Positions 3,408 through 41,105 of a stretch of DNA of 64,000 nt are shown piece after piece. The position numbers and the translations under genes are program-made. Numbering within the stretch: the stretch's first letter is position 1; each line of letters begins with the position of its first letter. A model generated the notes under the pieces. That model was not told where the DNA came from, searched no databases, and saw nothing but the letters and a program-made list of their open reading frames with translations. The stretch covers positions 34,100,001 through 34,164,000 of the forward strand of contig OZ004607.1 in NCBI GenBank assembly GCA_963924565.1, in the 5' to 3' direction. This stretch comes from Ascidiella aspersa (taxonomy: Eukaryota).

Positions 3408-6400
3408 TTCGCCTTTAGTTGCAATTATATTGCCCTGAAGAAGATTACCGAATATTAGGTGGTCAAAGCGTTGTCACTTTAATAATTTTTTGCCCGAAGA
3501 ACAATTGCACAATAGAAACAATGCCTGGCAGCAACAGCATATTCGTTTTTAAACTAAGTTGCAATAAAGCACCAATTTTTACCACAGGTTTCAGTCGTCG
3601 TGTGGTCTATATTGACACCCTAAAACTAGTCCACGTACCCCAAAGGCGTTCACAGACCCCATTTTAAGAACCCCTGGTTTAACAAGATAAGTTTTCCTAA
3701 AAGTTCCAACACATATTTCGGTAGTTGGAGTATTATGCAATAACTAAATACAGCGCCAGCATTATTCACACGTACAAAGCCCCGATTTTATAACCACAAG
3801 TTTCAGTCGTCGAGTGGTCTTTATTTTAAGTTTAAGAAACCCCTGTTTTAACAAGATAAGTTTTCCTATTAAAGTTCCATCACATATTTCGGTAGTTGGA
3901 GTATTATGCAGCATTTTTACACACGAAATTACAAGCGCCAATTTTTACCACAGGTTTCAGTCGTCGAGTGGAGATCGAAGGATGCGAAGTCGTCGAAATC
4001 GAGATCAACGCTTGCCGAGGCTGCTGCGAGTCTAGATCATTCCCATCGGACCGTGACACGGTGGGAAAGTCGGGCAAGAAGCACAACATCACTGCAAGGT
4101 CATCGTGCTGCGTCATGGTCAAAAGCGAACCGGTAATAATATTTTTTTTAAAGGCGAAAGATTTATACGTTGTGAAATAAGACCACAGTTGAACCGGTAA
4201 CAATACTGTACTAAACGCAGCCCTGTCATTGGTCGAGCTCCGTACCTTGCCGGCTTGCCATTGGTCGATTTGAATGTGACGTATTTTCGATATCTTATCC
4301 CTTGTATAGCGAACTGGTTTTGATCAGTTAAAATTACACGATTGTGGATTGAAGTTTAAGTTAACTCTTCATGTGTAATAGCGATATTATTTCTGTTGAC
4401 AACTTAAAGCAAACTCGCTGAACATTGGTTACCCAAAGTTGTTATGTTACGCAAAACTCAAAAAAATGTCACTGGTCAATACTTGAGGGGATAAAACATA
4501 ATGTGTACCGTTTTTATTGGGATTTTGTCCTACAAGTAAAACTAATGCAAAACAATTGACACGAAGGTGTGTATACTGCAGCGCAAACCAAAGCTAAAAA
4601 GGTAAACAAAATTTGTTTATACAGCAAAGTAAACCTGAAAAAAAAAAACTGCCGAAAAATCACTTTGACATGCGGAAGGTTTAAAGCGAAAGTGTTATAC
4701 ACGCATTGCAAGGTTCGTTGCCACTGCCGCTTGCATATAGGGTTCATTTACGCGGTCGGACATTAAATATTAATTCGCGACGACTTATGAGCGCGGCCTG
4801 CGTGTCTAATCGTGGCCTATGAGGTTTTTTTTCGAGGTCGTTAACAACGAGAAACGCTGCTAGCCCCTTTTCCGCACCGAGTGTGTTATTTTTTTGACGT
4901 CTGCTCATCTTAATATCTCACCGCCTGTCGCTTGGGGCGATAGAGAGCGCGCCCTCTTTGTGAGTTACGTTGCTTCGAAAATTGCAGTTGGTTGGTTACG
5001 GCGGTGCTAAGTGGTATTATGGCTGATGTTTTTTTACACTTTTTGATTGCAGTTATGTTATATGTTTCTGTAACTCTTAGAACAAACTTGGCGGCCAATA
5101 GTCGCCATTATTTTTTCATTTCAATCTAGATTCTAGATTCTAGAGGACAATTTTTAGGAACATCTTACCATTTAAGATATTTTTTTGATCTCAAAGGAAA
5201 AACTATTTATTAAATAATTTCAAAGCTACACAATAAGTAGGACCGAGGTGAAAGCCTGTCCTATCACAAAACCCTTGAAAGCTCCCAAAATAATCACCAC
5301 CTTGATATATTCAGCCACATATATTGACTCATATTTGCGCTCAACTGGTCGTCTATTCTAATGGTATAAGTAAATCGGAATGTTACGCTACTTATGTGAA
5401 TGTCAAGTGGTTTCGTATGGCTGTCTCTCTGCCCCAACCAACTCCACCACCCATATATCGAAGTTAATATTTAAACTAAGAAACGAACCATGGTTAAAAT
5501 ACTATAGCTGATTGTTCAAAAATATCATCGCGCAACAGTGTTCAATTAGACGTATATACAGAATGAACATCAAAGCCCATGTAAAAGTATAGGTAGCATT
5601 TTGTGACGTTTATAAGTTGACATATTTATTTTATACGCCTAAGCGTAACTTCTAGCCATTATGCTTCAAAGTGATCAATTAGATTTATTTAACTACGACA
5701 GTTTTGTTAAACAAGCCGTTTTCCAAAATACACAGTACATAGAGGGTGTTCTTTGACAAGGATCTCAAAGCAAAACACAACAGTTTTAAACAAACTTTAC
5801 TAAAAAGCATCTTGCATTTAACTCCTTCGCTCGAGTTGCCGTTTGTTACGTTTGACTTGAAATGATAAAGAAGTGTGCGGAACCTTTAAGACTTTATTTA
5901 TACAGTCGCGCTTTCGTGTATACGCAAACAAAGATATAGGGACGTTATTTATTCTTTTGAGGTCTCAGATCAATCTACACTAAAAGCAAAAACATTGAGG
6001 CTTCCGGCATTGGCTCGTGGTTCGACCAACGAATCGAAAGAATACAATATCGCGGCAATTAAATCTCAAAATGCCTGCAGAGATATGGGCAAGAAAACAA
6101 AATCAATCTCCGACATCCGGAAAAGGTTTCGAGCGGCGATATTTGGCGAGCGCTAATCCTTTTTGCGTTGCACGGCATTTTGTTGACTTGTTAGTTGCGC
6201 AACGCTCTTATCGGTTCGATCGACATCAGATTTTGCTACGTCACGAGCATCATCTTTAAACTTTCAATGTTGCTTTAAGGATCTGACGTAGCGATAGCGG
6301 GCCGGTTATGTAACGTGGGCCGGAGTCGGTGGTTTGCGACAAAAAACGTTGATTGACGATGCTTGTTTGCAGACTTGTTGTCGTTTTTTAATCGTTGGAA

Positions 6401-9400
6401 TCGTCCAGATCTTATCGCGATGCATTACAAGTGATGCGACCGCGGATCTAAATGCTTGATTGCATAACGAGATAGCCACCACCTGCTTCGAATCTTTTTT
6501 TTCTTTTCCATAAGTCGTAAGAACAGCGGTTCTCAACTTGTGATGATACCCGTTTTACGCCAATTCTTGATGTTTTCGGTCTAACTATCGTCGCTGGCCG
6601 GATTACGCACTCAAGTTTAGGCGCGAACGCCAACGCTAAGCTCAACATTTCGCACTAAAGACCGACTATATCAAACCACGCCACAAACAATACTGCCTGG
6701 TTCTTTGGATTTAGCAGTTGCAAAAGCAAAATAATTTCCATTTGACATAAAAGCAAAAGCGTAAAACAAATAGTGTTCATAAGTGAAAACGCAAAAGTTG
6801 AAAGGCAACAGCAAGGAATGAAGTGAGGGATACGAGGATAATTCAAACATAGCAAAACAAAGCGAACTAAGGCAAATTAATCGATTTAAATTGCGTAACA
6901 CTCGTGCCACTATATGTAGTATACACAAAGCTTTTTCAGGTGGTTCGTGAGAAGTCTTTGGGTCAAAATAAAAAAGTGTATTATTATCGCAGCTATATAC
7001 CGAAAGTTATGTTCTCACTTAGGCACCTCAAATTGATTTATAATATAAATTCCACGACTATAGTGCTTAGAGCGAGGTCTGTGTAATTTATTTTTTGGCT
7101 TTAACCAGTGAATTCGTGTAATGTTTCTATTTTAATGGTAGGCGGTAGAAATACCACTGTAAGGTACGCGACCATAAAAGATTGAGGACCACTGAAGTAT
7201 AGGTGCATTACGTTTTTTTTGCTAAAACTAATTGTTTGCTAAATGGTGTGTCACGGCATTTGCCTTGGAAAGTGCGACAGACGACGTCCACAAAATGACA
7301 TTTTCATTTGTAGTAAGGAATAAAAATGACTACCAAAATATGCTGGCAAATGTATTTTTACTGTGTTGCTCTACTTCCCTATATGAATCTGGATTTTACC
7401 ACCAAAAAAGTTGCATTACGGCCCCTAAATCGTTATATTTCCAACCTTAAAATATTATAAGACGCAGAACCAATTCAAACTATATCGTTGTTCAAAACGT
7501 TAAAATGAATAGCGTTTCAAAGTGATAATTTGTACGTAAATGCTTTTTTGGTCTCATTTGACCTTGGGAAAAATACAACTAAAATCTCCCCTTCCAAACA
7601 AGGAGATTTTTCCGTCGGTTTAAATCTGCCCGCCGTTCCACGCCACAAAATCACCGGCGCTTAACAAGCCGCAAACAGTTATGCCGGCAGAGTTGCGTAA
7701 CTTTTGACGCACGGTTGCGTAACAATTAATTAAAATGTTTACGTAACGTTTATGCATGGTCGCGTAAGACTTGAGGTTGATTTTACGTAACGTTATGTAT
7801 AGTTACGTAACGATTAAGTCAACACGAGACATTAATTACCTGTTGGAACTTACATAATTAGATGCTTGGATTTTTTTCTCCGTGTTTTAACACAGAGCGC
7901 ACATTTTTTCATTGATACACGACAAGGTTCATCAAACTTCGGAGAATTTTGTTGTACCCTTGGAAGCAATTGACTTTGTGGTTTAGTGGATTAGTTTTGT
8001 AGAATCCGAAAGACATTTTTTAAAGATTATTTTGTTGTAAATTTGCATTGGCTTAATAGTGAAAAACACTTTTAAATTTCTCAATTTGTTTAAACATAGG
8101 AAGACACATTAAACTTTGTAATAAAAGAAAAAAAAACATTTTTGGGGATTTTTTCAACGTTTTGCAAATGTTATTCATTTATTGAACAGTGAACCAATAA
8201 GATATTTGTGGCTTTCTCGTGCATCCAATTTTACATAGTGGCTTACGAAATAAACCAGTTCCATATTTAACAGGCTAACAGGCCCTTTGCTAACATTTCA
8301 AATGAGTATTCGACGAAAAAACGAGCAGCCATTACAAGAAACGGCCTGGCAAGGAATTTAGCAGGTCAAATATGTATTAAAATTCATATTCAAAATGATC
8401 ATCAATATCGTCGTTTGTGATTGGCCACGGGACGTGTGTTAGTTCTACGTTGTGTTGGCGTGTTAAGGAATCTAGAAACTTTGCTAATCCATAAGCTCTT
8501 GTTGTGCAAACTCTAGCTAATCGCACGTCAGGTTTTGCTGGACTAGTTTGCACGACTGCACGTGCAAAGTGCGCCTTTTTGTAGACAAGCTGGTTGTTGC
8601 TCTCCCGAGTGTTACCTTGACATATAGACGAGATGCAACACGAAATAATTGACAAGGGTGAAAATAAAAAAGCGAAATACCTCTGATTTGTTAAATTTAA
8701 ACCATGGCTACAAAGTGTTGAAATTAAATTCTCAATCCTAACCCTTTCCTATAAAAAGTTGAAGGTGTAACCGCAAAAAATCCTACTTTGTGTCAAGATA
8801 TTCCAACAAACTATATAAATGCGTTTATGAAAAACACCTTTTTGGTAAAAGTAAACGCAACTGATTGTTTTTATTAAAAAGCTCCAAAATTAGCGTCTTG
8901 TTGTGTTCGTAAAGTCACGAAAAACAACAACAACAACAACAACAACAACTGCTTTTGGGAAGAAAGTGATATATGCCACACGGCACGTAGGCGAACGCAT
9001 ATATATCGTTTGCAAACGTTCAATAAAGTTGGTTAGTTGTTTTGTACCGAGTTTTTTTGTAATTGAAGTACTTTTTCCATCACTTATAACAACTCAAAAA
9101 AACGGTAAGAAGGGTTTTGATCAAGGTTTTTGTCACTAAACATCTTTCCGAATGCTCTTCTTCGTCATCGCTCCTGGAAATCATTCGACAAGCAAATAAC
9201 AACAACAATAACATTTTTTTCGGCGAAATTAAAATGCCATGTTGCTCACGTACAGGCCAGATAGCGAATGTCGATCTCACTAAAATCGATGCCACCCCCA
9301 TATCCCTGATCCAGTCCCGGTGTCTGGCCTTAAGATAAAATCCGACATCAAAGTGCAATAATAAGCCTACCACCACTGACGCCGGTCACGTAAAAAGCGA

Positions 9401-12400
9401 CGTTTTTCGGTCAAAAACAAATCACCAACGAGCTTTGACCGAAAATGGCGTCCGATTTTATCTGACTACGAGTGTCACGAATGTCGCGACTCCAGAAACT
9501 CGATAAAACCCCAAAGCAATTAAGCGTCGCCCGGCAGCGATGGCATTGTGGGCGGCATCGCGACCTAATCTCGACGCCATGCGATTATGACGTCACAGTG
9601 GAGATGCGCGATCGTCGCGCGCGCTTTCGTCTGCATTCCGCGCCAGAAGTTTGAGATGTCTGCGCGAGGGTCTGTCTGTCTGTCTGTCTTAACGTTCGTT
9701 TACCAGCGTTTTTTTGGGACGAATTCCAAAGATAGCTAAAAGTTGTGCTTGTTCTGTTTTGTGCTTAGTTAGTGCCTTTCAAAAACAAGAACAACACTGC
9801 CTTTGGATCACGTTACACTGGTATTAGTATCAGTGCTAACAAAAGCATAAAACAACATTTCATTAAATGCTTTATTTTATGTCTCTGTAATAAGAAACAT
9901 TGATAATTTGTCATCATTTCGAAAAGGTAAATTTTTGGAGCGCCAGAATTTATTTTTATTACAAGTCTATGTCGTATATACCTCCTCATTTGGCGTTTTT
10001 TGGACAATTTTTAGCCAACGCTTTCCTCTTCCATTCATATAAAAATCAAAGTGCATTTAAGGTACACGTTTCTTTTTAATTTATCGTCGCTCTTTTTTGC
10101 AAAAGGTTAACTGCCATTAAAAAAGTTGTCAAGAGGAACGCAAGGAGAATTCAAATGTAGAACAAAATGTTGATTTAGTTCCGATGGAACTAACGCCTTT
10201 ACACTTCTGATATTCAATCAAATTATGACAAATATATAAAGCCAAACTTTTCAGAAAAGCGACACATTCGGGTTTCTAATTTCCGAGAACCAAGGCTTGC
10301 GCGCGTTAATTTCGGAAACAGCAGGCTTCTAGCTGACTTTGATTGACATTTTTCGACTTGTTTGGGCAACAAGTCCAACTCGAAACCAACGCCCAGTCGT
10401 GGGTCGCGTCCGAAACTATGTTTCCCCGAACAACAAAGAAGCAAACAGTGGCTAAAAATCGTCGAAAAGGTCGCCTAAAGCAGCGGTACCGGTCACCACG
10501 GCTCCAAAGGCCCGCCGACCAATTCGTCGCGTGAGAGAGAGAGTTGGGCCTTTGCGAAATCTGGCGACCGGTAAATAATCGTTCGGCGGCGTTCAAGCAA
10601 ATTCACCAGCAGGCGTTATAATGGCAACAGATTGAGTTAGGCGATAATCATCTCGCCAGCGCAGCGGCTACGTATTTACGTCGTGGATCGCGTGCCCTGC
10701 TGTCCGCGAAACTTTGCCCACCCGCCGGTCCCCCCTCCCCTCCCGGGTCCGATTATTCTGTTTCTGCCTCGTCATGTATCACTTGCTTTGCGCGCCCGTC
10801 TAATTGACAGGCGAAAGCGAGTGCCTGCCTGTTTTCATTGGCGTAATGTTGTTATTCTTCGAAGCGCCGCCCGGCTTATGCCAAAACAAGCACGCTTGCA
10901 GTTTTGCAATTTGACCCCTCCCCCTGTGCCTTATATAAGCGAGCCACCCATCGTTCCAATCCAAAACCCGATTGGAGTTTAAGAAAATATTGACGCTTCT
11001 TGTTCACTGTTGTCTTCGCGATTATACCTCCTTGTGATGTCACAATCGCTTGATCGCGCGCCTGTCCATCAACGAAATGAGCGCGATGGATTTTGCGCAA
11101 CCCAAAGAAGCGATGGCCTTTGATTGAAGAAAGTTCGTGGAATTTTAGCTCATTAAATTTGCATTTTGCGCCTGTTTATCCAGCGTGATTCACGGGTGGC
11201 CTCAATCTGCAGCAAAATGAAACTTTGATCGCCGCATTTTTTTTTAACATTTAGAGCAAGGGTGGGGACATATGTTGGACAACTATAAGTCCACTTAGGC
11301 CGGTTAGAACGATTCAATGCTTGTGGTAATCTGGGAAAACCGAAAATCTTAATCTGTTGGAACATAAAAAAAAACTTTCTTTCGTGTTTTTTAAATCTGC
11401 GAGCATCGTTATTTAATGCGGTGGCTACATCTGAATTTGCTGAAGACCGCAACATAACAACTCAAAAGTAAAAAAATGATGTGGGGAGTTTAATTATTTC
11501 TTTGAAAAGGCTTCGATTAGGGATTAATGTTAACGTTAAAGTGTATTACGACGTACAAATTTATTAAGAATTGCTAAGCAGTTGCCCACTAGTGATCATT
11601 TTGGACAACAGCATCGCAATACGGCTGAAGAAATGGAAGCCGCCCACATTACTAAATAAGTTCCCCATCTCTCGAATATATAGATGCTGCAAAAATTCCC
11701 ACCGACGATGTTTCAAATGTCACGCCCGATGCTATCGGTCGTCGCAAAAAAAACGGCCTTTGCATAATAACCGCTTCCATGCAACTGACACGTCCAAATA
11801 AGATAAAAAATTAAACGCACGATTCGCTTGCGATTTGAACGGCAGCATAAAAAAAACAGGCCTGTCGATCTGGCCTTCCGATAATGTCCCTTTCCCGCTT
11901 GCCTGCTGACAGCTTTCGGGGTGCGCGAAAGATTCCTACACGGGATTAAGTATATTCTGTTTTTTTTTATGTAGGGTTGTATTTTTATGCAGTTCAAATG
12001 CATTGCTACCAGTTACAGCCTTTACCTCTTTTTCTTATAAACACACTCCCTGCAGACTCTTTTGAACACACATCTGATCTTTCCTACTCCATTAAACAAA
12101 CGCCATGAAGTTTCTTAAACAAACGTCCTTTATAGTTCATTAAACAAACTTCCTGTAGTTACTCTTATTTATTTTATTCAAGGCTATAATTTTTTCGATA
12201 GTGACTATAGAAATGTTCAAGTGTAACTGCAAAAATGAAAAAGGGTCAAAAATGTTTTTGAAATAAGAAAAAAAAATGTTTTGAAAATTAGGACGAACGT
12301 CGAACGTGCTTATGTGCTTGTGTGTGCGACTGTGTGTATTGGTGTGTGTGTGTGTGCTTGTGTATTTGCAAATTAAACACCCCTGTTATTTTTTTAAGCC

Positions 12401-15400
12401 ACTCTATCAATGAGAAAACCTAGAAAATTTAAAGCCAACTTAAAGGGGAATCGTTTTTTGCTTCTCTCCACAAGGTGGCGACATAAACCCGGCGCATATT
12501 AACTCTTTGCGTGAAGTGATGAAATCGTTATATATACTCGTGATAATTAACACCGTTAGGTGAAAATGGGGTCATTTTTTTAACACAAAGCTTGAAACAC
12601 AGTGTTTTTTTATTTTTGCATAAACAAACGTAACGTAAACAATTATGATATACTGCCCTATAGGTTCATTCGGTGGTTATTAAGGTGTTTTGTTATTAAA
12701 TCGGGCTCCCCACTGCGCAAGCCAACGACCCTGCTTAATAATTTATTCCAGGCAACGGTGACCCTAGATTGCCCCTGTGCCATCAATATATACCATGGGC
12801 GTATAAACTTCATACCTTATGTTCATGACTATACAGCGTGAGTCATGCCCTGTTACCTGCCGGGCCGCTGAAGTATTTCTGGGTGCGTGAAATCAAGAAT
12901 TTTCTCGCCTTTCGCGACTGACTCAAACTTTGTGCGCGTTAAAATTTCATGTTTAGCATTTCTAGAAAACCGCCGGCCATCGCATTTCTCCAAGTCGTGA
13001 CGCAATAGCGGAGTTTTTTATTGCTTTGCTTGGGATTTTTTTGCGACTGCAAGCTGACGTATACTGAATGCGTCGATACGATAGTTAGACGTTATCTTGG
13101 CAGACGAAATAAGGTCAAACCTTTCAGCCAAGGCGAAAAATGCGGTTGATCGACGGATATTAAAGCTTGGTATAACATTAGAAATTGGTCAATTTTCGAC
13201 AAAATAAAGTATGCAGAATATCGACGCACTTTGTAGTTACTCATTGGTAATTGTAAGAATGAAAATGTATATCGAAACACCACAATTATAGTGCACGACA
13301 TACATACTGCAGCAATTAGAATGCTTTCGTTAGTTTTCAATTAGCTCAAAAAAAAAATGGGCAACATCGGATGACAACCAAAAAAAATCCCCAAATTTGT
13401 TTTACCCTTAAATTTATTCGTTTAACTCTTAAATTCTCCTGGATTTTGCAATTCGGAAATATCTGTCGAAGAAAAACAAATTCTAATATTAATGTTGTGC
13501 TATAGGTATATCAAAGGCCATATAGGAGTAAGTAATATTTTGAACGTTCTGGTTATCTCTTTTTTCATTTTTAACATCAAAATTAACAAAGAGACATTCG
13601 AAACATGAAAACTGTTACCTACATGTCTATATGGGCTTTGATATATTTACTACGTCTAACTAAAACCTCCGACCATTATGCACCAAATGCTGTACTTATC
13701 CTGAAGATTTCCTTCACCAAATAAAGTCAGGGTGCACTCCGCTATCAAATTTATTTTAGTTCTCGTCAACACTTCTCAAAACTGTGATAAACAATTTAGA
13801 GTCCGTCTTAAAAATTATCAAGGGCTTCATTGCCTGAACAAAACTCACAGCTGGAACAACATTAATCCTGCGGGCCAGGGCGGGTGTGTCGTGCTGTAGT
13901 TTCGAGGATATTTAGACGTGTTGCGGTTTCACTTTCATTGAAGTGTCGGAAGCTTTTCTGGGCAAGCAATTGTGTGTTGTGTTAAAAAGGTAATGAGAAG
14001 CGAACCCTGGGCGTTTATGACGGAGCGTAAGTGCTACTATACTATACTAAGTGCGTGAGTTTTCACACGGGCCACTTTTAATTTGACGTAATCCCGTGTC
14101 GAGGCCATTGTTCTGAACGGGTTGGGCCCGATTTAAACCGACAATTTAAAAATAGTCGCGACCTGATACCGAAATGACGTAGTCGTTTATCGTAACTGGA
14201 ATCGCTTTCATGTTCCAGTTAAGCTATAGTACCGAGTGTGGCGAATTTTGATATCTAAACCTATTTTTGTTATTAATTTCCTTTTCAGTTTTCCAGTTGC
14301 TCAGCGTCTGTTTGTTCATTACAGTATAACTTTTAAATTAACAAAGTATTAGGCGGTTTAATAATTTCATAAGCAAACAATATTTAAGATTTAGATTAAA
14401 GGGGAAGCCTCTTAAAAACATTTTCACTTCAAATTGATTAATTGAGAATTGTATGATGACGTCATGCTCAGAGTCACACGTTTTAGTTTAAGGAACGAGT
14501 TTTCAGCTAAAGCGATCACCGGTTAAGATAATCGGGGATTTTTCCCCTTTTTTTCAACTAAATAAAACCGATTTGATCGCGAAAGTTTACTTAAGCCGCA
14601 TAGTTGTTCTGCTGCTGGAAAAACGAACAAGTGTATCGCATTTAACTTAAGCGACATATTTTAGAACGAGTTGTGAAACTTTGCGCAAGTTTGGAAATTC
14701 CATTTTTGCCGATTTTTATCGGTGCTATAGCGTATTGTTAAAGCCATATTGAAAAACTTAATAATCCCAAAAAATCGAATTCCTCCCGAAGAAACACTCT
14801 ATTGCAATTTATGGATTACAACTTTAGGATGTTCTTTGTAGTACGACAGATTACGAATTTGAATTGCGCCTGTCAATCAGACGGCTTATCGCCGTAATTA
14901 TTCGTTGATTTTTACCATTAGGCGTATAATTGCACCCTGTTATATCTACCCAGCAATACGGACATGGCTTTGGATTTTGAGACGCGTCGCAAATTTGTTG
15001 CCCGGCTTACGGTTTATTTTAATCTGAGAATCTTTGGATCGCGTAAAATATTTCAGGTATCTTGCTATTAGTTTAGCTTCTGTCTGTTTTTTCTTTGAAT
15101 GCGAGTTTTTTATTTGTGGCGTTGACATTTCAAGTTTAAGAGGATTTTAAAAATTGTGAAACTTTTCCGGAAACTCGACTTATCCGAACAGCATTTGGCA
15201 TCAGCGATGATCGACCTACTTGACTGGTATTTAAGTTATTTGTTGGCATGAGATAAAGACGAGTAAAATGTTGTACCTTTACAAAGCCTTTGGATTTCCA
15301 AAGGTGAACAAAATGTTCTGCGTGATTGTATAGCCTGTTAATGTGCCAAGAAGCATATTATGCAATCTCAATTACACCCTTGCAACGACTAACTGCTATG

Positions 15401-18400
15401 TCAAAGATGTTTGGCGTATTGTGTCCAGGTTTAACAACTCCTCGGCGACGAATTTGCTTATACACTATTATGTATATTTGGCCACTGTACAAAAAGAGTC
15501 CAGCTCTTTCCGTAAAGCAGGATTAAGTCAAAAGTGAAAATCAGACCGTTTTTTTTCTATGGTCTTCTCCAGTTAGTTTTGTCGTTGCCAGTTGAAAACT
15601 TGCACCACTTTGTACACTTGCTGAGTTATTTCCTTTATCTGAGGTAACTTGCGGTTTGTGTGCTCCTTAATTTGCCAATTCTGTATTTACGAGTTTTGCA
15701 ACCGTCGCTAACTTGTTAAATAAATATACATGTCTATTTTCAACGCAGACAACATTTTACACCGAACGTATTAATCGACGCCTACAACTAATAAAACGCG
15801 GGATTTCCGCAAAGCAACCATCACTGGCCATTCCCGGCATAATTCGCAACTTCAGAGTGAATTGAATCACTGGAAACCTCAAAAAAGGAAATCACAACTA
15901 AATGACTAAAATGTAAACAAGTTTTTAATAAAAACTGTTCTATTTCGGTCGCTATAATCCGGGTGATTAATTGCTTTGCGGTTGTACACTCATTGACTAT
16001 ACTTGAACCACACGCGCTAATGCATTCTGATTCTCGTTTCACTGGTAGTGATGAAACTGTTATATGTAGCCTATCGCTAATCTTTTTAAACGGCTACATA
16101 ACGTCAAGGTTTCGACGATTGGGACCAAAAGTCTGTGGTCCAACGAATTGTAATTTGATTATTGATAAGGGGGTAACTTACTAAATTCTACTTTGAAATA
16201 AGATGCAATTTTGGAACGACAAATGTCAAACAAGCAGGATTAAGCCTTTGATTGCTTAAACTGTAAATCTTAACTTAAAGGAATGCAGCTTTTGTATCAT
16301 TTTTGGTTATTGAGTATTTGATTCCAGGTCATTAGCCTACTATCGAATCCTATTTTAGCAGAGGTTTATACGCATATAGGTAACGGCCGTGAAACGCCAA
16401 CAATTTATTATCTAAGTAAGATTTGCGCCGTGCTTTAATATGCAAAAAATAGGTGTCTATATTTGGTCACAGGATTGTTTTTCCGTAAATACCCAACAAT
16501 AAAATCAAAGCGAGCGTTGGGAAGAGAAAGAAAACGACGAATAAACAACAGAAAAAAGAAAAAAAGGGAAAAAACGTGCAAATTGCGATCGATTTTGTCA
16601 AAGAATTCCACGGATTTATATCAATAGGTCGCTGGACTTTCCCCTGCAGCTAGAGCAAAACCGTCACCGCGGTATTTCGCGGCGTTGCTTGTGACGTCAC
16701 AAAGGTATTTGCCGGTGTTTGTTGTAGCGATCGCGATCGGAGCGCCAGAGATCGAAACGCGAAGTTGCTTAAAGTTTGCGGTCTGGCGAAAAACAAGTTG
16801 CACGAAGCTCTAGTCATCAGGCAACAACTTATCGGGCAACAACTTATCGCGCAACAATTTAACGGGAAAGAATTTATTATGCAACAAAATATCGGGCAAC
16901 AATTTTTGTACCACAAAATAACGGGCAACAATTTATGTACAACAAAATATAGGGTAACAAGTTTTCGGGCAACAAAATATCGGGCAACAATTTTTTTGCA
17001 ACCAAATCTTGGGTGGCAATTTTTGGAGCAACAAATTATCGGGAAACAATCCATCGGGCAACAAAATATCGGACAACAATTTTGTTGCAAAAAAATATCG
17101 GGCAACAATTTTGTTGCAAAAAAATATCGGGCAACAATTTTTGTGCAACAAAATATCGGTAAACAAATTATCGTGCAAGAAACCAAGGGGCAACTCCTAA
17201 CTTTTCCTGAAAGGAAACTTCATAATTACATTATTTTTTATAGCTTTCAAAAAAATTGAAAATTAAAATATAAGCAAAAAAAATAGTTGCAGGAAAACGG
17301 ACCTCGTCACAAATTAAAAGCTAAGCCGAAAAATACTCTCGGCGGGAATGCGCATTAATATGCGTGTCGTTGGTCGTTAAAAATCCTGGGACGCCCGTCA
17401 ACTTTTGCTCTGTGAGATTTCGCAACAAACGCGCCCCGCGGCATCAACTTCTATTAATTGCCGCCGAGGCCGCGACGAAACGACTTGATTTGCCAAAGAG
17501 CTGAATTCGCGGAAGTCGCATTCTTCAGTGGGCACCACTTCTTCACCAAAAAAACGCCTAGAAAACCTGACCCCTGAGTTTACAACACAGCTAAGCCATC
17601 GGTGTCAACCAGGCCGATGTTTTCCTACGTCACAATCAGCGGTTGGCGTACGTCATAATGCCCCGCGACCCGGCAACAGCCGCCTGTTTTTGCGATCGCG
17701 CTTAACTAACGCTTGCACGCAATTATCGCTTGCCAGAAAGTGTTTTAAGACCCTGTTGACCACGGCGCGTGTAGAGAAAGGCCTTGGCTAAACAAGCAAT
17801 TTTCCCTTGTGTAATTTGTGGCACAACGCACTGTGGAGTGTGACCCTTTGATTGACAGTTTTTCTTTTCTGAAATTGTTTAACTTGTCGGGGTTTTCTCA
17901 CAACCACCAGCGTCGAAATTTGCTATAAAATTGTTGGAATTTTATCACAACAAACCCTTGAAATTTACTACGGGCATAACTTCCGTCGAAAAACAAAAAC
18001 AGCCGATGCCATACATTGTTTGCAATTTACTTGAGGGTAGTTTAGCATGGCGGGGCGTTTATATTTTATACCTCTATTATATACGCGTTTCATATGCCGT
18101 TTTTATACAGGACGTTTATATGCCTACTCTACAAGTAATAGCTTATCTTTATTCCGCTGTGTAAATGAGGTCAAAATATTGTAAATATGTACAAGGCTCA
18201 GTTTTAAGCATTTTTCGTTTGGGTGTTTTTTTGTGTGACGGCCTCTACATTGAGTCGATTAACCAGGAAGCTTTTGAAATATCGGTACATCAAGGGGCTG
18301 TCCAATTTATTTGTCTCCAATCATTTTTTTTTTCGATCCAATTACATCGTATTTTATTTCCGCTTCTGACAGACAAAATAACTAAATTCTAAAAACAGAC

Positions 18401-24400: not shown

Positions 24401-27400
24401 TTATTTAGACAAGCAATAACAATAAAAAAAATAAAAAAATAAAAAAATAACATTGTATTGGTTATCCAATTGTTCGCAAAGCGATATCATTCTCCAGTTA
24501 AAAAAAATAGTTCTATTTTTGTGTAAGAGGGTTCGGTGCTTTCACCCTGAAGAAGGTCGAATGTAACGAGAACAAAAAATAATTTCCAGGGATGCTTTTT
24601 TGTTTATCATTTGGGATCCTTTGTTAACTTAAACAACCTTACAAATTGTTCAGCGGACAAAAAAAGTTGAGGAAATAATACGCATACATTATAGTGAGCG
24701 TGCTATTCCGCAATATCGACACAGTTATTACTTGTGGCGTCCCAAAACCTCTCGTTGGCTGCCTGTTTGTGGCCCAACAAACAGAGTGGAGCGTCGTGTG
24801 GAGACCTGTCACTTCACCTAAACACGCAAACGACTTCGCAGCAAAACAATCCTTAACGCGATAATGGGCCACTTTTACACGACCGCTTCGAAAGCACAAG
24901 AAACCCTTTTTGTCGCTCCGTTATACGTTTATACACTATTAAATTTGCCCCTTTAAAAGCACTAATCTATACGTTTCATTTCATTTATATGTGTTCCATT
25001 TTACAACCCAAGGTGGTGGAAATTGCTCTAGGGTACTTTTTAACCGTGCAAACTGGCTTTCTATGTGCTCGGTTGACTTAGAAAACCCAGATTTACTTGT
25101 ATTTTTTTTTTTTTTTGATAAGTTTTACAACTTGCGAATCAGGTTCGCCGAGATTCCATTCGGCACGAAAGAGCTCTATAGAGATTTGGTTATAAATGTG
25201 TTGTCAATCCAACCAGATTTGTCAAAGTTGGCATTTTTAAATTAGATTTAATACCAGACACCATGGCAGATATATTTTTTAAATAAGTCTTTGTTTTGAA
25301 ATGACCTGACTTGACTTAAAACTTTTGATCAAAATTACTTCACTTGACTTAAGTCTTTCGGACAAATGAATTGACTTGACTTAAGTCTTTTGGACAAATG
25401 CCTTGGCTTAAAATGTATTTAGGAATACTAAACACGGATCTATTCATAATATTCAGTAGAAAGAGAGTGGCCCAAATAATAGATTAAAGATTCAAAAAAA
25501 TTGCCGAAATGTTTGCTAATAAAAGAATGAGTCTTTTATCTATTATTTGGGCCACTCTCTTTCTACTAAAATGTATTGTTTTCATTAAGCATTTTCTTTA
25601 TAAAATATTCCAATTTTTGTGCATAAAACAATAAACGTGCTGTGCGTTTTTGGTATTTATTAATTGGGATATTGCTCGTATTCGAACGAGTTACCAATTT
25701 TAATAGCTTGACATGTAATTTTATGACAATGGCTTGACTTGAAATTGACTTGCTCCAGATATGACTTGACTTGATTTTTATTAGAAAAGACTAGACTTGA
25801 ACTCAAGTTATCCTACAAATGACTTGACTGAGGTTTAATTAATTCCAAAATAACTTGTTTTTAACACTGTCAAACTCTGACACAACGACGAAACAAGCTA
25901 TCAATTGAACCAATGGCATAAAATACCAGCAAAGACGGAAAATGACGTTTCTCTAACTAGTTTTATTGTCAGATATAAATGTGATGTCGTTTCCAACCAG
26001 GCCTAAAGCATGTGAACGATACCCACATAGAAAAACAATACGACGCTTGACGATTTTGACCAACCGGTTTTCCCGCAAACCTCCCTGCGTTTAAATGCTG
26101 GGCTGAATCTTACACCTCAAATTATTTTCTCGCCGCAAAGGTTCAGTCAAAATAAACGCTTCCGCCATTTAGAGGCTTGTCAGCGAAGGCCACCTACATC
26201 ACAACGCCTCGAATTTTTTCTCTTCTTTCGGAGAGGTTATCTGCAAACAGTCGGATTATTATTTTCGCCCGCGCAAACTTTTATCCTTTAACACGCGCAC
26301 GCAGGCGTCCGTCTGTCATACAACTGCGTGATTGATTTTTAATTAAAAAACGCTGCTACAACATTGGACCGGTTACCGAAAACAAACCGGGCGTGTATTG
26401 AGTTGTCGATTTGGTTGATGCGAACTATGCGGGATCGCAGTTGGAAACTTTCGCTTTTGCGCTTGTCCGTGTTGTAGGCACAACATACTACGGTGCATGG
26501 AACGTCAGGGCAACGTTAAAAGTTCGCCAGTTGTTTTGAAAAGAAGCGATTTGCGTCCCGCAGCGGCCCTATACCTGCCAACAAAATCTGGCTTCGACTG
26601 TTAACTGTGGGACTCTTTAAGATGGGCAAAACAGATACTACAGCGAGGCTTTATATGGAATTACTGCAGCCTCAACAAAATGTTTATGGCTGTAAAATTG
26701 AGAATTTGACGTGGGCGTTTTACATTATATTACAATAACATTCCAGTTGCTGCTACAACTATATCATTAAATGTGCATGTAAAACGGCAACGTTTTCAAT
26801 AAACTGGAATTCATAGCCCAAACAATTTTGTAATATAAATTATGTTGTACTACTAGAATTAGGTGATGGTCGTATTTGTAACTATTCAAAAACTGAAAAG
26901 CTAAAGGACTTTTGATTAATAGCATTTTACCGTTGACGTGATTTCGCAAAACCATGCTTCATCAGTCAAAATAAGAAATGATAGTTTCAAACAGGGCCAA
27001 TTGTTTGACAGTCTTTTACTATTCATATCGGCTTTTCCTAAATACGGCATCTTTTCGACCCTATGCAGCCTTAGGATATAACCTAAATTTATAAATTACG
27101 GACACAATTATAAGACCCTAAAAATAAATTAAATCGAGCCTGTGAAAGTTGAAATTGTCAAAAAGTCGCATTGTAGTTTAAAATCGTTAAGTTTTTACGC
27201 AACAGCGATTAATCGGGTTCCAAAAGATTAGAAGCAACGTGAACAATAGGATCATGGCGACGCTAAGTAGATCAAATGCCTAATCTTGTTTGCGCCAAAC
27301 TTATTATAATGCCTTCATTGTCTTCTACGTAGCGCTTTGTATCTATTAATTGTCCTTGTTTAACCTTGATATATCCAAAGTCATTTTCTAATTTTTTGGC

Positions 27401-30400
27401 CAATTTTAACTTTCTTCAGATAAGCTGTTTTTTTTAGAAGACGTTGTTGCAATATTCAAGCCCATATAGAATTAGGTAACATTTTGCACATTTGAAATAT
27501 ATCTTTATTCAATATCTCTCAAAATGTTACCTACTTCCATGGGTTTTCATTTTGCTACTACGTCTTCTACAACACTTTATCAGAAGAAAGTTAAAATAAA
27601 AATAGTTTAGAGGCAAAGAAGCACAACTAACAGATGTAATTAAAAAATGTCTACTACTTATATATATTGGCTTTAAAAGTCGTGTGGTTTGTCTACCTAA
27701 AACTTCCCACCATTATTTTCCAAGGTTTTAGAAGCAATTGATCAAAAATGTTCTACGAAAAAGAGCAATGCTGATTCGGTCTACAAAACAACTTACATAC
27801 CGGTCGAAGTATTTTGTTTTCGAAATTTATTCCTGATTGGAAACCTTGTTTGCGGTGTGCATAAACGCCAAAACGTCAGTAAAGTTTCACGGAAAAATAG
27901 TTGTCTTTCGGTGGTTTTGTTTGCTTTTGCAAAACAATTCCGGGAAGCAGAATTTACACGAAAGCGTCGAAATTTTCCCCGATGTCGCAAATCAGATAAG
28001 TCGGTCGCATATCTGCTAATGGAGGGTAAATATGAAAATCGCAGGCGCAATTGACGATCATTTTGCATTAGCTTTAAGATGTCGCAACAGATTTCGCAAA
28101 GTAATTGATTTGGCCTTATTGGGCTTTTAAAAGCGGGATTCGATTTTACAGTAGAGATTTTTATCAATTTTTGGACCGTGAGTTAGCAAAAAATATAATT
28201 ACATCGATGGCTATTGTGGTAGAGTGTCCTCGTTGCTTTGTCATTTGCAGATAAGGTTTGAATTTCCATCAGTGGTTCCTAAAATACAGGAAGCAATCAG
28301 TCGGTTTTTCCCGCGTACCTGACCTTTGTGATCTCGTTTTTATTCCATCTTATACGTTTCGCATATAAGGCTGACGTTAAGTGAAATTCCGAGGAATTCA
28401 AATCATACTATAACCCGCCTAAACCCACACGTCTGCCATTTTGTGCGAATGTCCATCACTTGGTGTACAGCAGCCTGACAGCAGCGCACACCCCTGGATT
28501 TTGTCACGCACGCATAAACAAGCCCTCCGACCGCACATCTAGCATCAACGATGGCCCGGTGTGATTCCACGTCAGCCAAATCTCAAATAAACAGCGACGC
28601 GCCGATACGGGGCTTAATGCACGCGAATTGAGCGGCCACGAAGCCCCAACTATCACCTGCCTTTTATATCTTGTCCCTTGATCGCTTAGCGGCTTCATAA
28701 TTACCCGTCGGATCCCTTCGCAATCTCCACTCTATGGTCAATTGGGACCTGTGGTACGTGCTGTGCATTAGAGGCGCGATCTTGTTGTTTGGCCATAAAA
28801 TTCTGGCCAGCACCTTTTTGCCAGGGCCCGTTTTGGGTTGTTGGCCTGATTTTTTGGTTCACTTTTATAAACCTGAATGTTGCGATTTCGTTTAACGTTC
28901 TGCAGTTTGCATGCAATCCTATTTTTAAGTGGATTCAGGTGTTTTCTAATCGTTTTAGTACAGCGTATAGTGCTATTGGCCTTCAGGCTGTATTGATATG
29001 CAAATCGTGTATTTTTCTTTTCATGGTTTCTTGGCGAAATTAGAAGTGTGAATTTAAAAATATAGAGCACAAATGCCAGAAATGTGATGATCATTTGCCT
29101 CGATCATGGGTTGTTTTTTAAATGAGAAAGCGTGACTGTCAACGCAACATGTGCCTGATGTTCTACCTCGCTGTTGTTCCTTAAAAATGTTTCTTCCCAA
29201 TCGTTCGATCCTCAATCTTGTGTGCTGTCCTGTAGCGCAAAACCTTTCTCTATTTTCAGTCCGTCTTGTTGCCATTGTACAGGTATGTTCTGTTGTTAGA
29301 TATTTTAAAGTGGAATTCAAGTTTTTGCGTTAAAAATACATATGAATGAATTTTATAGTAAGTTACGGGTTTCTGAGTTTTGAGATTCCATGTAATTATG
29401 CTCTGGTGTTGAAACCAGTTAATTGTTCAATTTGTTTTGTTAAAAAATAATTCAAACTATTATTAGGCCGTATAATTCGTTAATGTGGACTTAGGTTTTT
29501 CATATTGTTGCAACCTTTTGCGTTAACCAGTTGTCAAAATCTGTTCCAACGTCTATTTTTGTGAAGCATTCTGTGCATGTCGCGTACAGTTTTGGTATCG
29601 AGTTTCTTTATTTTTGTTTAGTTTAGAGTTCATTTAAACATGCTCGACTTGGCTGAGTAACATATCTAGTATATTCCACCGAGATATTAGACATAAAAAA
29701 AGATTTCTATCACTCCCAGCTGCTATAACTTGCATGTAAGGATGTCTGATAATAATGGTTCAGAGTCGATACTTGGGTGGTATCGCCGTCGATCCACTAC
29801 GAAATAAGTACAGTAATTCCATATCCAACGATGTGATTTCAATCTTAAAAATTAATTTATCCAACAACTCAAGATAACGAAACCTCTTAAACAAAAAAAC
29901 AAACAAATATTTCTTTAAAAACCTGGAAAACGTTCTCAATGTTTTAATTTGATTATTTGGTCATGGCATTTTCGTCATTTATCCGGAAGGATCGTCATAC
30001 TTCACGTCCATCGCAATAAAATGTATCGGACACTAAGAACTGTCAAAGTATCGGACATGTAAAAATGTCGATAAACATTTTACAGTGGACTACTTCTTTT
30101 TTACTTTTTTTTACTTCTTTTTTGTATTGCCGTTCTACAAAGCCCCTTGTCAAATAGCCTTTGGCTAACTTGTTAAATTATAATTGTGCTCGTTGGCAAA
30201 ATGTATCCGTTAAGAAAAACGTCAAAAAAAATTTAATTGTTCTCGTTGACAAAACGTATTGAAGCCCTAGCGTTAAAGACTTTTGTCTTGATGAAACCGT
30301 GTTCCTTTGACCTCTATGTGTTTCCAAGTCCCAGCCAAACGCGCCCGCATCTCGCTGAGTTTAATTTGCGGCTCGTCGTCGGCAATTTGTTGACGGCAAT

Positions 30401-31635
30401 CTCATCTCGGCGCCGCACGCAAGCCAACTTAGCCGGGATAAGCGACGTATGTGCGGGCAACCGTAGCCCTGCCCTGCTCTCTCGTTAGTCGCAAAATCGG
30501 CCAGAATCGCATCGCCAAATCACACTCGGCATTCCGCGAGTCAAAATGGGTGCGCCCAAACGGAATAGCTGGAATGCTGCAAATTTGCTAGTCAAGGCTC
30601 TTTTTGTATTTTTTTTTTCAGGTTCTTTTTTTTGCCGGTGGCTGCTCAGCCAGGTTAGTGAATTTGTGAGTATGTTTTAGCAAATTACACTCAGCATTGT
30701 CTTGTCCACGAGCAAACTGTAAATAAATTGTTTGTGTATTTTCAGATTTTACTTTAAAAATCGGCTTTTATCCAGAAACAAGGCTGTGCGAAATTTCGAA
30801 TCGTAATCACATCGCAAAATCAAAGTCGGGATTGTTTTCTGGGACTATAGTTTCCATTGGCAAACAGGATAGTCGGAATGTTTGAAACTTTTGTGGCTTT
30901 CAGCAAGTTTGTTTTGCACCAGGAATTGGTAAACAGTGCTGCCCGAAATTTCGAAACCTATCGGTCTTTCCTTTAAATGGTGAATTGAAGTTTTCTTTTG
31001 AATGGCGTATAATGTTTTTGAGTTACTTTTTGGATGCATATACGATACTGTGGTTTCCACATTTGCTACTTGTATTTCCACCTTTTGCATTGTATGCAAA
31101 CGATGACTAAATACAGTAAGAATCCGTGCTATAAAACCAACTTGTTTCGCCCAAAAAGTCCCAACCATGTGTACCCTCTTTGCAGGTTACACACATAAAC
31201 AAAAAACAATTCAGTTATGGTTTGCAGTTCAACGGAACAATTTCTACCTTGTAAGATGAATAAAAAAAAACAGTATAGGTTCACAATTTCAGGTAACTCA
31301 ACTTATGAACGATAAAGTAAATTTCGGCATAGTGAACTGCAAAAATTAGCTTCGAACATTTCAATTCCATGTATTTTGCCTGTTTGAGCACTATATTGAC
31401 GTCATTTGGTATCCGGTCGCGATACACTTGGTTCAAAAAATTTCCGATATCGGTATCGGAGTAAATATCAAGTATCTGTCATCCCTTTACCCACAATGTA
31501 TATACGCCACTGTGGGGTAAACGGCATTTTTTGTCTTTTTTGTAGGTTCCGTTCCTGATCCAGTGCGGTTCGGAAGAGATCCTCAAGGAGATCCATTCGG
31601 CCACTGTTTGCGCGTGCGGTCCGTGCAGCGATTAG
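2296..31635 (+). CDS. GPA2: Glycoprotein hormone alpha-2 (thyrostimulin alpha subunit), 117 aa; coding exons 2296-2380, 3954-4132, 31546-31635
   Basis: Spliced translation MKVFLLISLALFSSVVSGKREVGQCGLQ/GFSRRVEIEGCEVVEIEINACRGCCESRSFPSDRDTVGKSGKKHNITARSSCCVMVKSEP/VPFLIQCGSEEILKEIHSATVCACGPCSD*. It has a signal peptide, cystine-knot CxGxC and CxCxxC motifs, and GPA2-typical CESxxFPS, HNIT (N-glycosylation) and CC. Introns are GT-AG with compatible phases (1, 0). Confidence 0.9.
3354..3404. repeat. (TA)n microsatellite
   Basis: About 25 TA units. Confidence 0.95.
7692..7858. promoter_or_regulatory. Homotypic cluster of PAR-bZIP/D-box-like motifs in GPA2 intron 2
   Basis: GTTGCGTAAC (7692, 7714), TTTACGTAAC (7738, 7782), GTTACGTAAC (7802) and CTTACATAAT (7849) within 170 bp. 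Confidence 0.5.
8922..8949. repeat. (AAC)n microsatellite
   Basis: About 9 AAC units. Confidence 0.9.
16818..17209 (+). repeat. Minisatellite, ~15/30-bp units (ATCGGGCAACAA core)
   Basis: Repeated ATCGGGCAACAA and TGCAACAAAAT units; this array explains the overlapping ORFs at 16650-17259. Confidence 0.85.
21358..21740 (+). repeat. Two adjacent copies of a dispersed repeat (MITE-like); third, inverted copy at ~36300-36480
   Basis: Shared CACACACATATGTGTG...CTAGC..TTCTGAAGCTG...AACGATTACG...ACAGACT blocks. Confidence 0.6.
22600..22860. repeat. Dispersed palindromic repeat family (also ~5570-5670, ~13510-13690, ~27450-27570)
   Basis: Shared AAGCCCATRTAGA...TTACCTAC...ACTACGTC...AACCTCC.ACCATTATG blocks. 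Confidence 0.5.
25290..25869 (-). mobile_element. Second copy of the AAGTC-repeat MITE (inverted), carrying a nested hairpin element
   Basis: GACTT arrays; the reverse complement of its right end aligns with positions 31-90. Confidence 0.65.
25455..25567. mobile_element. Small foldback MITE nested in the AAGTC MITE
   Basis: ~40-bp near-perfect inverted repeats AGTAGAAAGAGAGTGGCCCAAATAATAGAT... / ...ATCTATTATTTGGGCCACTCTCTTTCTACT. Confidence 0.6.
28208..28276 (+). mobile_element. Possible decayed tRNA-derived SINE head
   Basis: TGGCTATTGTGGTAGAG (A box-like) followed by GGTTTGAATTTCC (B box-like). Confidence 0.3.
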
Positions 31636-31770
31636 TACGACGCCATCTTGGAGCCCTTTCCACGCTTGTCTTGCTGATCCATGTGCTGGACCCAATCGCT
31701 CAGCACCCAAAAAAGTTTGGGGCCTTTTCCGTTTTGATACGCAGAATGTAACGCAAAAAATAAAAATAAA

Positions 31771-38591: not shown

Positions 38592-39097
38592 CAGTGGTTC
38601 TCAACCGGGGGTCCACAAAACGTTTTTAAGGGGTCCTAAAAAACTTTTAAATTAAATTAATTAAAGCTGGGATATGTGCTTAATCACGTTCTTGGTAAGT
38701 GATAAAATCACATTGTAACATGTTGTAAATCGTATTCAGTATGACGTAACACTTCGATTGTGATCTAACACAAATAGATTGTAAAGTGAACGGCAGCATT
38801 ACAAGAGTTCACATGTACTGGACCTAGGTTTAACTTTATGCTATCGTTCGCAAAGATGAACACAACCACGCATTTCAAGACTTGCTTCGTAGATGCAGCA
38901 GCAAATAAAATAAACGTGTCATAATAAAGCAATCTGGTGTTTTCTGTTTCTTCACTCAACATACGGTGCCCTACGCGGATATACTGAACTATTAAAAAGA
39001 ATTAAACGCACATATTACACCAGAAAATGTAAGGGGTCCGCGACTATTTGATGACATTAAAAAGGGATCACGGGTACAGAAAGGTTGAGAACCACTG
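38592..39097 (+). mobile_element. hAT (Charlie-like) MITE, 506 bp
   Basis: Perfect 15-bp TIRs CAGTGGTTCTCAACC / GGTTGAGAACCACTG and a perfect 8-bp target-site duplication CGATAGAC (38584-38591, 39098-39105). Confidence 0.9.
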
Positions 39098-40181
39098 CGA
39101 TAGACTATTTCGCAATCTGTGTGTTCATAGTGAAATCTACCGAATGGTTTGACATTTTTTTAACTTCGCAATCGCATGAAACTGAACAATTGCAAAAAAC
39201 TCACTACAGGTTTTGTTAATTTCGTTATTATGTTAACCTAACGTGTAAATGTTGACAAAATTTAAGTCAAAAAATAATCGCCCATAGTTATAAGCTATAA
39301 TGTTTGGTACCCAAAGTATTGTGTTTTGATAAATATGCTACCGTTAAAGCATTGTTCATTCTTTGGAACAATTGTGAACATTTATAAGAAAGGTTTTAGC
39401 TTTACTGGAAACGTCCTTACGGCACCTTTTCCTTAACGATATAACATAGGTTTTTTAACGTGGCATTATTTACGATTTTCGGTATTAAGATATCTCCTAA
39501 TGAATTAGTTAAATAAATGTATAGTCCCTAAAGTTTTTTTTTTTCTTCTATCTTTTTCCGTCACAACTCTTTAAAATAAACGGACATTGAAAAGTTTATG
39601 TGGGCGTTTTTTTATTAAACAAAGCGGAACGTAGAGAAATCACAGCAGGACGAATCACTTTGAAGACGTGTGCAAAAAAAAGAACAAAAACAAGAAAAAC
39701 CAGAAATGGCGACACGAAGGTTCGCAAACGCAAACCGAAGGGGGCGAAAAAGTTTGTGAAAAAACGCCTCAAAAATGATTCTTTGGCGCTGCGAAAGCGC
39801 CGCAAAATTAATTTGGTGCGTCTTTGATGAGAAGCAAAAGTTCAATCGAAAGTTTTGCCGCTTTTTGGGTGATGTAAGACCTCCCCAGGATCGCGTCTGC
39901 TTGCATAGTAGGCGGAAACGACCGCCTTCAACTGTCCGTGGTGTTTCAGAAGTGCGGCCCACAACCAACCACCACCACCATCATCATCAGAACACAGGCA
40001 TTTCTTCTGACCTCGTGTCGCCGTCGGTAAAAACAAACGAAAACGCACAGCGCGGTGCCTTTTCAGGGAATGTGCAAAATAACGTAAAACATGAAACAGT
40101 GGTTCGCTGGGCGACGGATGGGCTTTGCCGGGCGGCAAAACGCTATTTGTCCTTTGGTTTTCAGGGCTCTTTTCTCTTGCT

Positions 40182-41105
40182 CTAGTAGAGAAGACGGCAG
40201 GCCATGTTGTCGGACAGGCACTTGGCGCACATGCACGACTTGGGGTAGCTGATGTAGTAAGAAGGATCGAAGCCGTCGCGGCATTTCAGCGTGAAGCGAC
40301 GTACCCTGACCTTCTTTGGCCTGCAGATCGAGCTGTTGGTGGTCATGTGTCGCGGCGCTACGTCGGGAATCTAAAGATAGAGCAAAAGGAACGTTAATCA
40401 CCGCTTTCCAGGGCGCCGTTTGAGGCTTTAGCCAGAAGTAATCAGCGCTTTTGAAACTCGCTCGCCGATTTTCGACCTTTAATTGCTTCCTACAATATGA
40501 TTTAAGCGCCGAAAGGCTTAAAGGCGATTTCTACAAAGTTTACAAGACTTCGGCATAAATTTGCCTTACATAGGTAAACCTTATGTAAGTTTTTACAGTG
40601 CATTAGTCGTGCAACTTTTGTAAGTGACCCGGTTTAACAGTTACTGCCTTTCTACTATAGGTAAGGCTAGTTTTACTATAAAGCTAAACGTTTTAACGGA
40701 GTCGGATCTCACCTGAAAGGTTTCGCACATTCCCTTGCACTGGGGTACGGGAACAGTCTTGCTGTGACAGCCTTCCTTGGACAGTGTCATCGGCTTCCAG
40801 CTGATGCCGCATGTCTTGCACTTCTTTTCCTTGGGCTCGCTGACCCGGTACATCTCGGCGTCGGCTTCGTCGGCCGATCGCGTCAAACGGTTGAGCAAGG
40901 TTAGAACGAAAGCGCGGGAACCGATATTGAGAGGCGCTCGGGATGCGCGTATGTTTCGCTTGCTCCGGACCGCTACAGGCTCCGGCTTGAAGCGGGAAAG
41001 AACGTCGTCGAACTCTCCGCGGCTCTCGGCGGTCCCGACCCCGGCCAAAGCGGCTGCGACCGCCAGGACGAAAAGAACAACTCCGGTGCACTTTTGGTAC
41101 TCCAT
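40182..41105 (-). CDS. GPB5: Glycoprotein hormone beta-5 (thyrostimulin beta subunit) with N-terminal extension, 193 aa; coding exons 41105-40713 and 40370-40182
   Basis: Signal peptide, then ...CKTCGISWKPMTLSKEGCHSKTVPVPQCKGMCETFQ/IPDVAPRHMTTNSSICRPKKVRVRRFTLKCRDGFDPSYYISYPKSCMCAKCLSDNMACRLLY*. This matches the beta-type pattern CxGxCETxxxP...CxxGxDPxY...CxCxxC...C and lacks a seat-belt. Single phase-0 GT-AG intron at 40371-40712. Confidence 0.9.

Follow-up and report, generated by a model that had tools for sequence, protein, structure and literature searches.

An eleventh cysteine in each of the thyrostimulin subunits GPA2 and GPB5 of the tunicate Ascidiella aspersa and a possible inter-chain disulfide

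Thyrostimulin, composed of the subunits GPA2 (alpha2) and GPB5 (beta5), is the ancestral glycoprotein hormone. Since 2002 it has been a matter of debate whether these two chains can make a stable heterodimer in the absence of a seat-belt. According to one survey neither GPA2 nor GPB5 has a cysteine free for an inter-chain bridge and, for want of it, there should be no stable heterodimer at circulating concentrations (PMC3224965); a review from 2025 still treats the heterodimer question as unresolved (PMC12691860). GPB5 of vertebrates and lancelet has ten cysteines (PMC6752823), and in starfish ten are found in GPA2 and eight or ten in GPB5 (PMC4772807). The common alpha subunit of vertebrates possesses a unique bridge that connects an additional ring cysteine with the most N-terminal cysteine (PMC3224965); in human chorionic gonadotropin (hCG) alpha it is the bridge 7-31, which is missing in alpha2 (PMC9910494). 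An odd number of cysteines is the signature of covalent dimers and is known from bursicon, basal metazoan hormones, BMP, gremlin and cerberus (PMC9910494, PMC3224965). In the solved alpha2/beta5 dimer of C. elegans the knots of the two chains lie about a quasi-dyad, and in each chain the CxGxC cysteines project from the inter-chain beta-sheets (PMC9910494). The genes of both subunits adjoin in invertebrate genomes and in Ciona (PMC3280201). Here, we describe the GPA2 and GPB5 genes in a stretch of 64,000 nucleotides from Ascidiella aspersa (assembly GCA_963924565.1, contig OZ004607.1, positions 34,100,001 to 34,164,000; called the window in the following), in which each subunit carries one cysteine more than expected.

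Judged from spacing and alignment, both subunits keep the ten canonical cysteines, which are predicted to pair within the chain, and each of them adds an eleventh, namely Cys52 in GPA2 and Cys96 in GPB5. The best single explanation appears to be a covalent GPA2-GPB5 heterodimer linked via C52-C96, a reading that is plausible, though unproven and somewhat short of probable. A sequence-only reading of the window had already counted 11 cysteines in the mature GPA2 chain with Cys52 of the motif CRGCC as the extra one, and 11 in GPB5 after its signal peptide with Cys96 of CKTC as the extra one. Both counts hold, and both codons read TGC (Table 1).

In GPA2 the ring is encoded by TGC CGA GGC TGC TGC (4013-4027, plus strand) and the cysteines of the mature chain are distributed over the three exons as 1 + 6 + 4. 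Their spacing (13-9-CxG(C)C-26-CC-13-14-CxCxxC) equals that of the amphioxus and insect rows in table S3 of PMC3224965, save for the ring cysteine after the glycine. As a rule members of this family have ten cysteines and a ring residue other than cysteine behind the glycine; the chain described here has 11 and CRGCC. Exon 2 alone reaches 27.8 bits with Pfam PF00236 Hormone_6 (cut-off 25), and its phmmer matches are the C. elegans alpha2 chain (8enb_A) and human alpha chains. HMMER aligns this exon to human alpha residues 25-62 and places CRGCC onto CMGCC (residues 28-32). Three residues ahead of knot Cys 1 there is Val, hence GPA2 is without an N-terminal CxxC. Because its L1-L3 cysteines are kept, which CGA lacks, this alpha gene is of GPA2 type and not of CGA type; the combination typical of CGA (Cys7 and Cys31 in one chain, no L1-L3 bridge) is absent from it.

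Past its signal peptide, in which a further cysteine (Cys6) is located, GPB5 has 5 + 6 = 11 cysteines in its two exons. The context of Cys96 on the minus strand is AAG TGC AAG ACA TGC (KCKTC), with CKTC at 40820-40809, and knot Cys 1 is Cys99 (codon 40811-40809). The spacing C-2-C-13-C-9-CxGxC-19-C-13-C-15-CxC-2-C-6-C represents the chordate pattern (table S2 of PMC3224965) with one cysteine added ahead of knot Cys 1, and one loop is a residue shorter than published for chordates (13 vs 14). The family rule of ten cysteines (eight in some species), none of them N-terminal to knot Cys 1, is broken by Cys96. The ring residue is Met (CKGMC), so that the ring has no cysteine of its own. Exon 2 alone gives 23.5 bits with Pfam PF00007 Cys_knot (cut-off 24; exon only), and the full-length Styela orthologue gives 57.6 bits. 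Since the chain stops five residues past its last cysteine, and since there is no extra cysteine in L1 or in the C-terminus, GPB5 is without a seat-belt. The N-terminal extension (40821-41027) shares basic cleavage-type sites with the orthologues from Styela clava and from transcripts (RRRPRR, RRNRR, LPRR); a KK immediately ahead of Cys96 is found in the window species only.

The additional residues occupy the two positions that are bonded with each other in the alpha subunit. This had been proposed beforehand and agrees with the alignment of CRGCC to CMGCC and with the 7-31 bond of hCG alpha as described in PMC9910494; equally, the assertion that canonical GPA2 and GPB5 have even cysteine counts and no seat-belt is borne out by the literature (PMC3224965, PMC6752823, PMC4772807). 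The Cys31 equivalent is present in GPA2 alone and the Cys7 equivalent in GPB5 alone, as had also been claimed. Because GPA2 lacks the N-terminal CxxC and GPB5 lacks a ring cysteine, neither extra cysteine has the intrachain partner known from the alpha subunit. With Val three before knot Cys 1 in GPA2 and Met in the ring of GPB5, C52-C96 is the only hetero pair available.

According to the proposed mechanism GPA2 and GPB5 would associate head-to-tail in the endoplasmic reticulum. The N-terminal strand of GPB5 would sit at the quasi-two-fold axis beside the CxGxC ring segment of GPA2, and the two unpaired thiols could then form one inter-chain disulfide from GPA2 C52 to GPB5 C96. The outcome would be a thyrostimulin heterodimer that is stable in sodium dodecyl sulfate (SDS) and independent of a seat-belt. 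As the CxGxC cysteines emanate from inter-chain beta-sheets in the C. elegans structure, the ring residue of GPA2 should lie at the heart of the interface. The extra cysteines moreover count as a hint of a covalent dimer, because an odd cysteine number is an accepted mark of such dimers among cystine-knot ligands; each protomer shows the odd number known from bursicon (11 and 11). From this we infer both that C52 and C96 are close to each other in the dimer and that they are bonded. A complex prediction in which each of the four exon pieces was entered as a chain of its own scored 0.25 (mark 0.34), which weighs neither for nor against binding. Within the vertebrate alpha chain, the ring position is in reach of the residue three ahead of knot Cys 1. 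In hCG the N-terminal strands would be antiparallel across the dyad and the positions three before knot Cys 1 would face each other, as would the ring positions; this is read from the engineered cross-links alpha5-beta8 and alpha31-beta37, which are said to go back to Heikoop in 1997 and to the Moyle laboratory. If this geometry holds, GPB5 Cys96 would be about equally near to the ring of GPA2 and to its own ring.

With GPB5 exon 2 as query, a full HMMER scan revealed four orthologues: XP_039248966 from Styela clava, two proteins from transcript assemblies and an exon call on metagenome contigs of an animal designated species 2. They are 40-46% identical to the exon of the window. A CxxC ahead of the L1 loop is present in 5/5 GPB5 sequences (CKTC in the window, CGGC, CGQC, CGQC, and CDKC in species 2). 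In the alignment of these five sequences 11/11 cysteine columns are invariant vs 15/90 of the other columns, and none of the five columns preceding the first cysteine is invariant (0/5). The motifs CGGC and CGQC of the Styela-type proteins (P0007, P0004, P0008) recall thiol-oxidoreductase active sites; the corresponding motifs are CKTC in the window and CDKC in species 2.

GPA2 of species 2 was reached by walking ~31 kb of metagenome contigs from GPB5 through four successive gene calls, and overlapping contigs from different samples were 99.9% identical. In this species GPA2 has 11 cysteines with the ring CRGCC, and GPB5 has 11 with CDKC and a CKGMC ring. Exon phases and the convergent layout of both genes are common to the window and species 2, and intron 2 of GPA2 (~17.6 kb) is at the same position. 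The codon equivalent to Cys52 is TGT, and neighbouring codons have undergone synonymous changes. Synonymous differences between the two species affect the cysteine codons as well as their neighbours, so the cysteines were retained although the species diverged long ago. In intron 1 of GPA2 from species 2 an apparent GC donor (GAAG|GCAAGT; L024, ~14228, minus strand) is found at the phase-1 position of the GT donor of the window.

Co-occurrence of both cysteines in related species had been set beforehand as a test of the proposal. With CRGCC in GPA2 beside CDKC in GPB5 of species 2, both extra cysteines co-occur in 2/2 species for which both genes are known, and the GPB5 cysteine is present in 5/5 orthologues; by this test the proposal was not refuted. 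The extra cysteines are a real and conserved feature that is probably clade-wide. Searches for homologous proteins with GPB5 exon 1, with the open reading frame (ORF) of GPA2 exon 2 and with the GPA2 alignment of both species gave no matches. At the GPB5 locus of Styela clava, the 10 kb on either side contained neither a GPA2 exon nor a call for a neighbouring gene. A metagenome search with GPA2 exon 2 gave one short match alone (L013), which is probably spurious, and a search in a protein-cluster atlas led to generic cystine-knot clusters and nothing more specific.

A second DNA sample from this species was compared as well. Its contigs over GPA2 exons 1-2 show six differences, all synonymous (four in exon 1), and the Cys52 codon is identical. 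In the 6% that was read of one RNA run from this species, GPA2 exons 1-2 received no reads, and intronic repeats alone were transcribed: reads within 2200-4300 are confined to 3123-3690 and 4117-4187. These two segments are high-copy interspersed repeats in the GPA2 introns with a summed contig word depth of up to ~29,000 in a DNA run of the species. As RNA reads are absent from exons 1-2, the splice model of GPA2 rests on homology and on the exon structure kept in species 2. Run X4, which carries the label of another organism (organism B), contains a contig that matches GPA2 exon 1 together with its flanks (2246-2388) at ~96.5% identity and covers no other exon; this points either to a relative that is very close or to a difference in labelling.

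Table 1. Position of GPA2 and GPB5 gene elements in the window and layout of GPA2 in species 2
Feature	Position	Strand	Remarks
GPA2 exon 1	2296..2380	+	signal peptide and mature N-terminus; knot Cys 1 = C25 (codon 2368-2370)
GPA2 exon 2	3954..4132	+	acag acceptor; L1 Cys, ring CRGCC, L2 loop with NIT glycosylation sequon, CC doublet
GPA2 Cys52 codon TGC, extra ring cysteine	4022..4024	+	equivalent of alpha-subunit Cys31
GPA2 intron 2	4133..31545	+	27.4 kb, gt..tag, phase 0
GPA2 exon 3	31546..31635	+	coding 31546-31632, stop TAG 31633-31635; L3 Cys and CxCxxC
GPB5 exon 1	41105-40713	-	signal peptide, ~70-amino-acid N-terminal extension with RSKR, CKTC, L1 Cys, ring CKGMC
GPB5 Cys96 codon TGC, extra cysteine	40820-40818	-	three residues before knot Cys 1; equivalent of alpha Cys7
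GPB5 exon 2	40370..40182	-	coding 40370-40185, stop TAG 40184-40182; six Cys
Species-2 GPA2 exon 3	~13.7 kb downstream of GPB5	opposite strand	same Cys spacing as window exon 3
Species-2 GPA2 exon 2	17.6 kb past exon 3		..INACRGCC..; 54% identical to window exon 2
Species-2 GPA2 exon 1	~0.85 kb past exon 2		signal peptide, single Cys (..PGCHVE), no CxxC, phase-1 junction as in window

Other explanations of the two cysteines have to be weighed. It is very improbable that they are an artefact, be it of wrong exon modelling, of faulty assembly or of a pseudogene. For this speak the GPA2 exons without RNA reads in the portion of the one run read, the unusual length of the last GPA2 intron and the tandem triplication of the exon-2 acceptor close upstream. 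On the other side the independent DNA sample confirms the codon and differs at synonymous sites only, exon structure, phases and both cysteines are kept in a species that is just 40-54% identical, the GPB5 orthologues include an NCBI gene model and proteins of transcript assemblies, and the reading frames are intact with canonical cysteine spacing. Chance or an assembly artefact is discounted since the Cys52 codon is unchanged in the other sample and both cysteines are kept in distant orthologues. Rather unlikely, though more serious, is the possibility that the two residues make no bond with each other and are free or capped thiols, are partners of other proteins or act as folding aids. The CxxC of GPB5 could for example act transiently on knot Cys 1 as a motif for redox reactions or isomerisation; for the ring cysteine of GPA2, a role as alternative knot partner is conceivable. 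The resemblance of CGGC and CGQC to thiol-oxidoreductase motifs fits this view, and the inter-chain bond is itself inferred. However, secreted cystine-knot hormones seldom contain free thiols, against which selection usually acts, the two residues are conserved like structural cysteines, and the middle residues of the CxxC vary (KT, DK, GG, GQ), unlike those of an active site.

Covalent homodimers in the manner of TGF-beta and BMP, with C52-C52' in GPA2 and C96-C96' in GPB5 and with subunits that could act alone, are unlikely too. They deserve attention as both positions would adjoin the (quasi-)dyad, so that each cysteine should face its own symmetry mate; odd-cysteine cystine-knot proteins commonly bond symmetrically between chains, and PMC3224965 argues for a separate action of GPA2 and GPB5, which are often expressed in different places. 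On the other hand the two extra cysteines are exactly both halves of the known alpha 7-31 disulfide, they occur together in both species with both genes known, GPA2 and GPB5 are adjacent and of single copy, and tunicate thyrostimulin is cited in PMC10319355 as activating its LGR. These arguments favour the C52-C96 heterodimer, and several points weigh against it. Because both positions are near the two-fold axis, symmetric homodimer bonds would be at least equally feasible. The co-occurrence of the cysteines in two species only could be the result of shared ancestry and not of coupling, and its count covers the window species and species 2; from Styela clava and the two transcript species GPB5 alone was obtained. 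In the portion of the RNA run that was read, co-expression of GPA2 and GPB5 has no RNA support, and the long N-terminal extension of GPB5 might undergo other processing than assumed.

GPA2 (plus strand) and GPB5 (minus strand) are convergent and lie tail-to-tail with their 3' ends 8.5 kb apart, and each is found as single copy in the 308.6-Mb assembly. Weak matches to GPB5 exon 2 at 27.94-27.97 Mb (L003/L004; G000 C1) were considered as paralogues and rejected since they belong to a tandemly duplicated gene with VWC and C-terminal cystine knot (CTCK) domains, which is the sole other weak match in the genome. GPA2 exon 1 ends with CAA G|gt in phase 1. The acceptor of exon 2 together with the first ~18 nucleotides of the exon is present in three tandem copies (3567-3605, 3779-3817 and 3933-3971; 69-95% identical). 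As the last copy alone runs into the true exon 2, the two upstream copies are apparently decoys that arose from local duplication. A cysteine-rich and A-rich ORF just 3' of exon 2 (4560-4763, six cysteines) was tried as exon 3 and discarded: it has no in-frame acceptor and a non-canonical cysteine spacing, and the real exon is located at 31546. Inside the long GPA2 intron a tandem repeat (16650-17260) shows overlapping long ORFs on both strands with a short unit (QQ.IG / CCP.F). Upstream of GPB5, ~7 kb beyond its start, an exon of eIF3 subunit D is located at 48467-48862 (Pfam PF05091, E 7e-34). Further on, an open frame of 562 amino acids (55567-57255) in which Q, P, S, N and T abound gave no match in Pfam and may represent a low-complexity exon.

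Tunicates are absent from the surveys of GPA2 and GPB5 cysteines considered here (PMC3224965 with its supplements), which state that there is no inter-chain cysteine. The tunicate cysteines are mentioned neither in PMC9910494 nor in the review of 2025 (PMC12691860); they may have been noticed before in functional work on Styela clava (Yang et al. 2023, Int J Biol Macromol 229:401). A chordate lineage with conserved unpaired cysteines at complementary positions of both subunits represents a natural test case for the debate on the seat-belt-free heterodimer. If the bond exists, selection favoured a permanent heterodimer, a stable ligand would be at hand for receptor and structural work, and an origin of the otherwise unexplained alpha 7-31 bridge would be suggested. 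If homodimers form instead, independent roles of the subunits would be supported. A wider scenario is quite doubtful: tunicate thyrostimulin would be disulfide-locked and its ring cysteine would be a derived character shared with vertebrate alpha, so that the 7-31 bridge would descend from an inter-chain bond of Olfactores that was internalised when alpha gained its CxxC and beta evolved the seat-belt.

In comparison with thyrostimulin of other bilaterians (human, amphioxus, insects and C. elegans, PDB 8ENB, PMC9910494) the subunits of the window belong to the same families and have the same ten-cysteine scaffold with near-identical spacing. The absence of a seat-belt in GPB5, the adjacent genes and the glycosylation sequon kept in GPA2 are shared as well. 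In contrast with the even cysteine numbers of those proteins, both chains of the window have a conserved eleventh cysteine, and the long N-terminal extension of GPB5 with furin-type sites is a further difference. Bursicon (burs/pburs) and the cystine-knot LGR ligands of basal metazoans resemble the window proteins in having 11 cysteines per chain and are presumed to be covalent hetero- or homodimers. However, they represent different families and their inter-chain cysteines were modelled elsewhere (8-9', 9-8' and 14-14', PMC9910494), whereas the intrachain pattern of alpha2/beta5 appears intact in the window. Vertebrate CGA uses the same two positions, i.e. the CxGCC ring and a cysteine three before knot Cys 1, but there both are found in one chain and bonded within it, whereas here they are split with the ring cysteine in GPA2 and the CxxC in GPB5. 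The seat-belt hormones LH, FSH, TSH and CG would reach the same goal of a dilution-resistant heterodimer by a non-covalent seat-belt that is latched by an intrachain disulfide of beta. The engineered disulfide analogues of hCG reportedly concern the same neighbourhood; they are artificial, whereas the cysteines of the window are natural and conserved.

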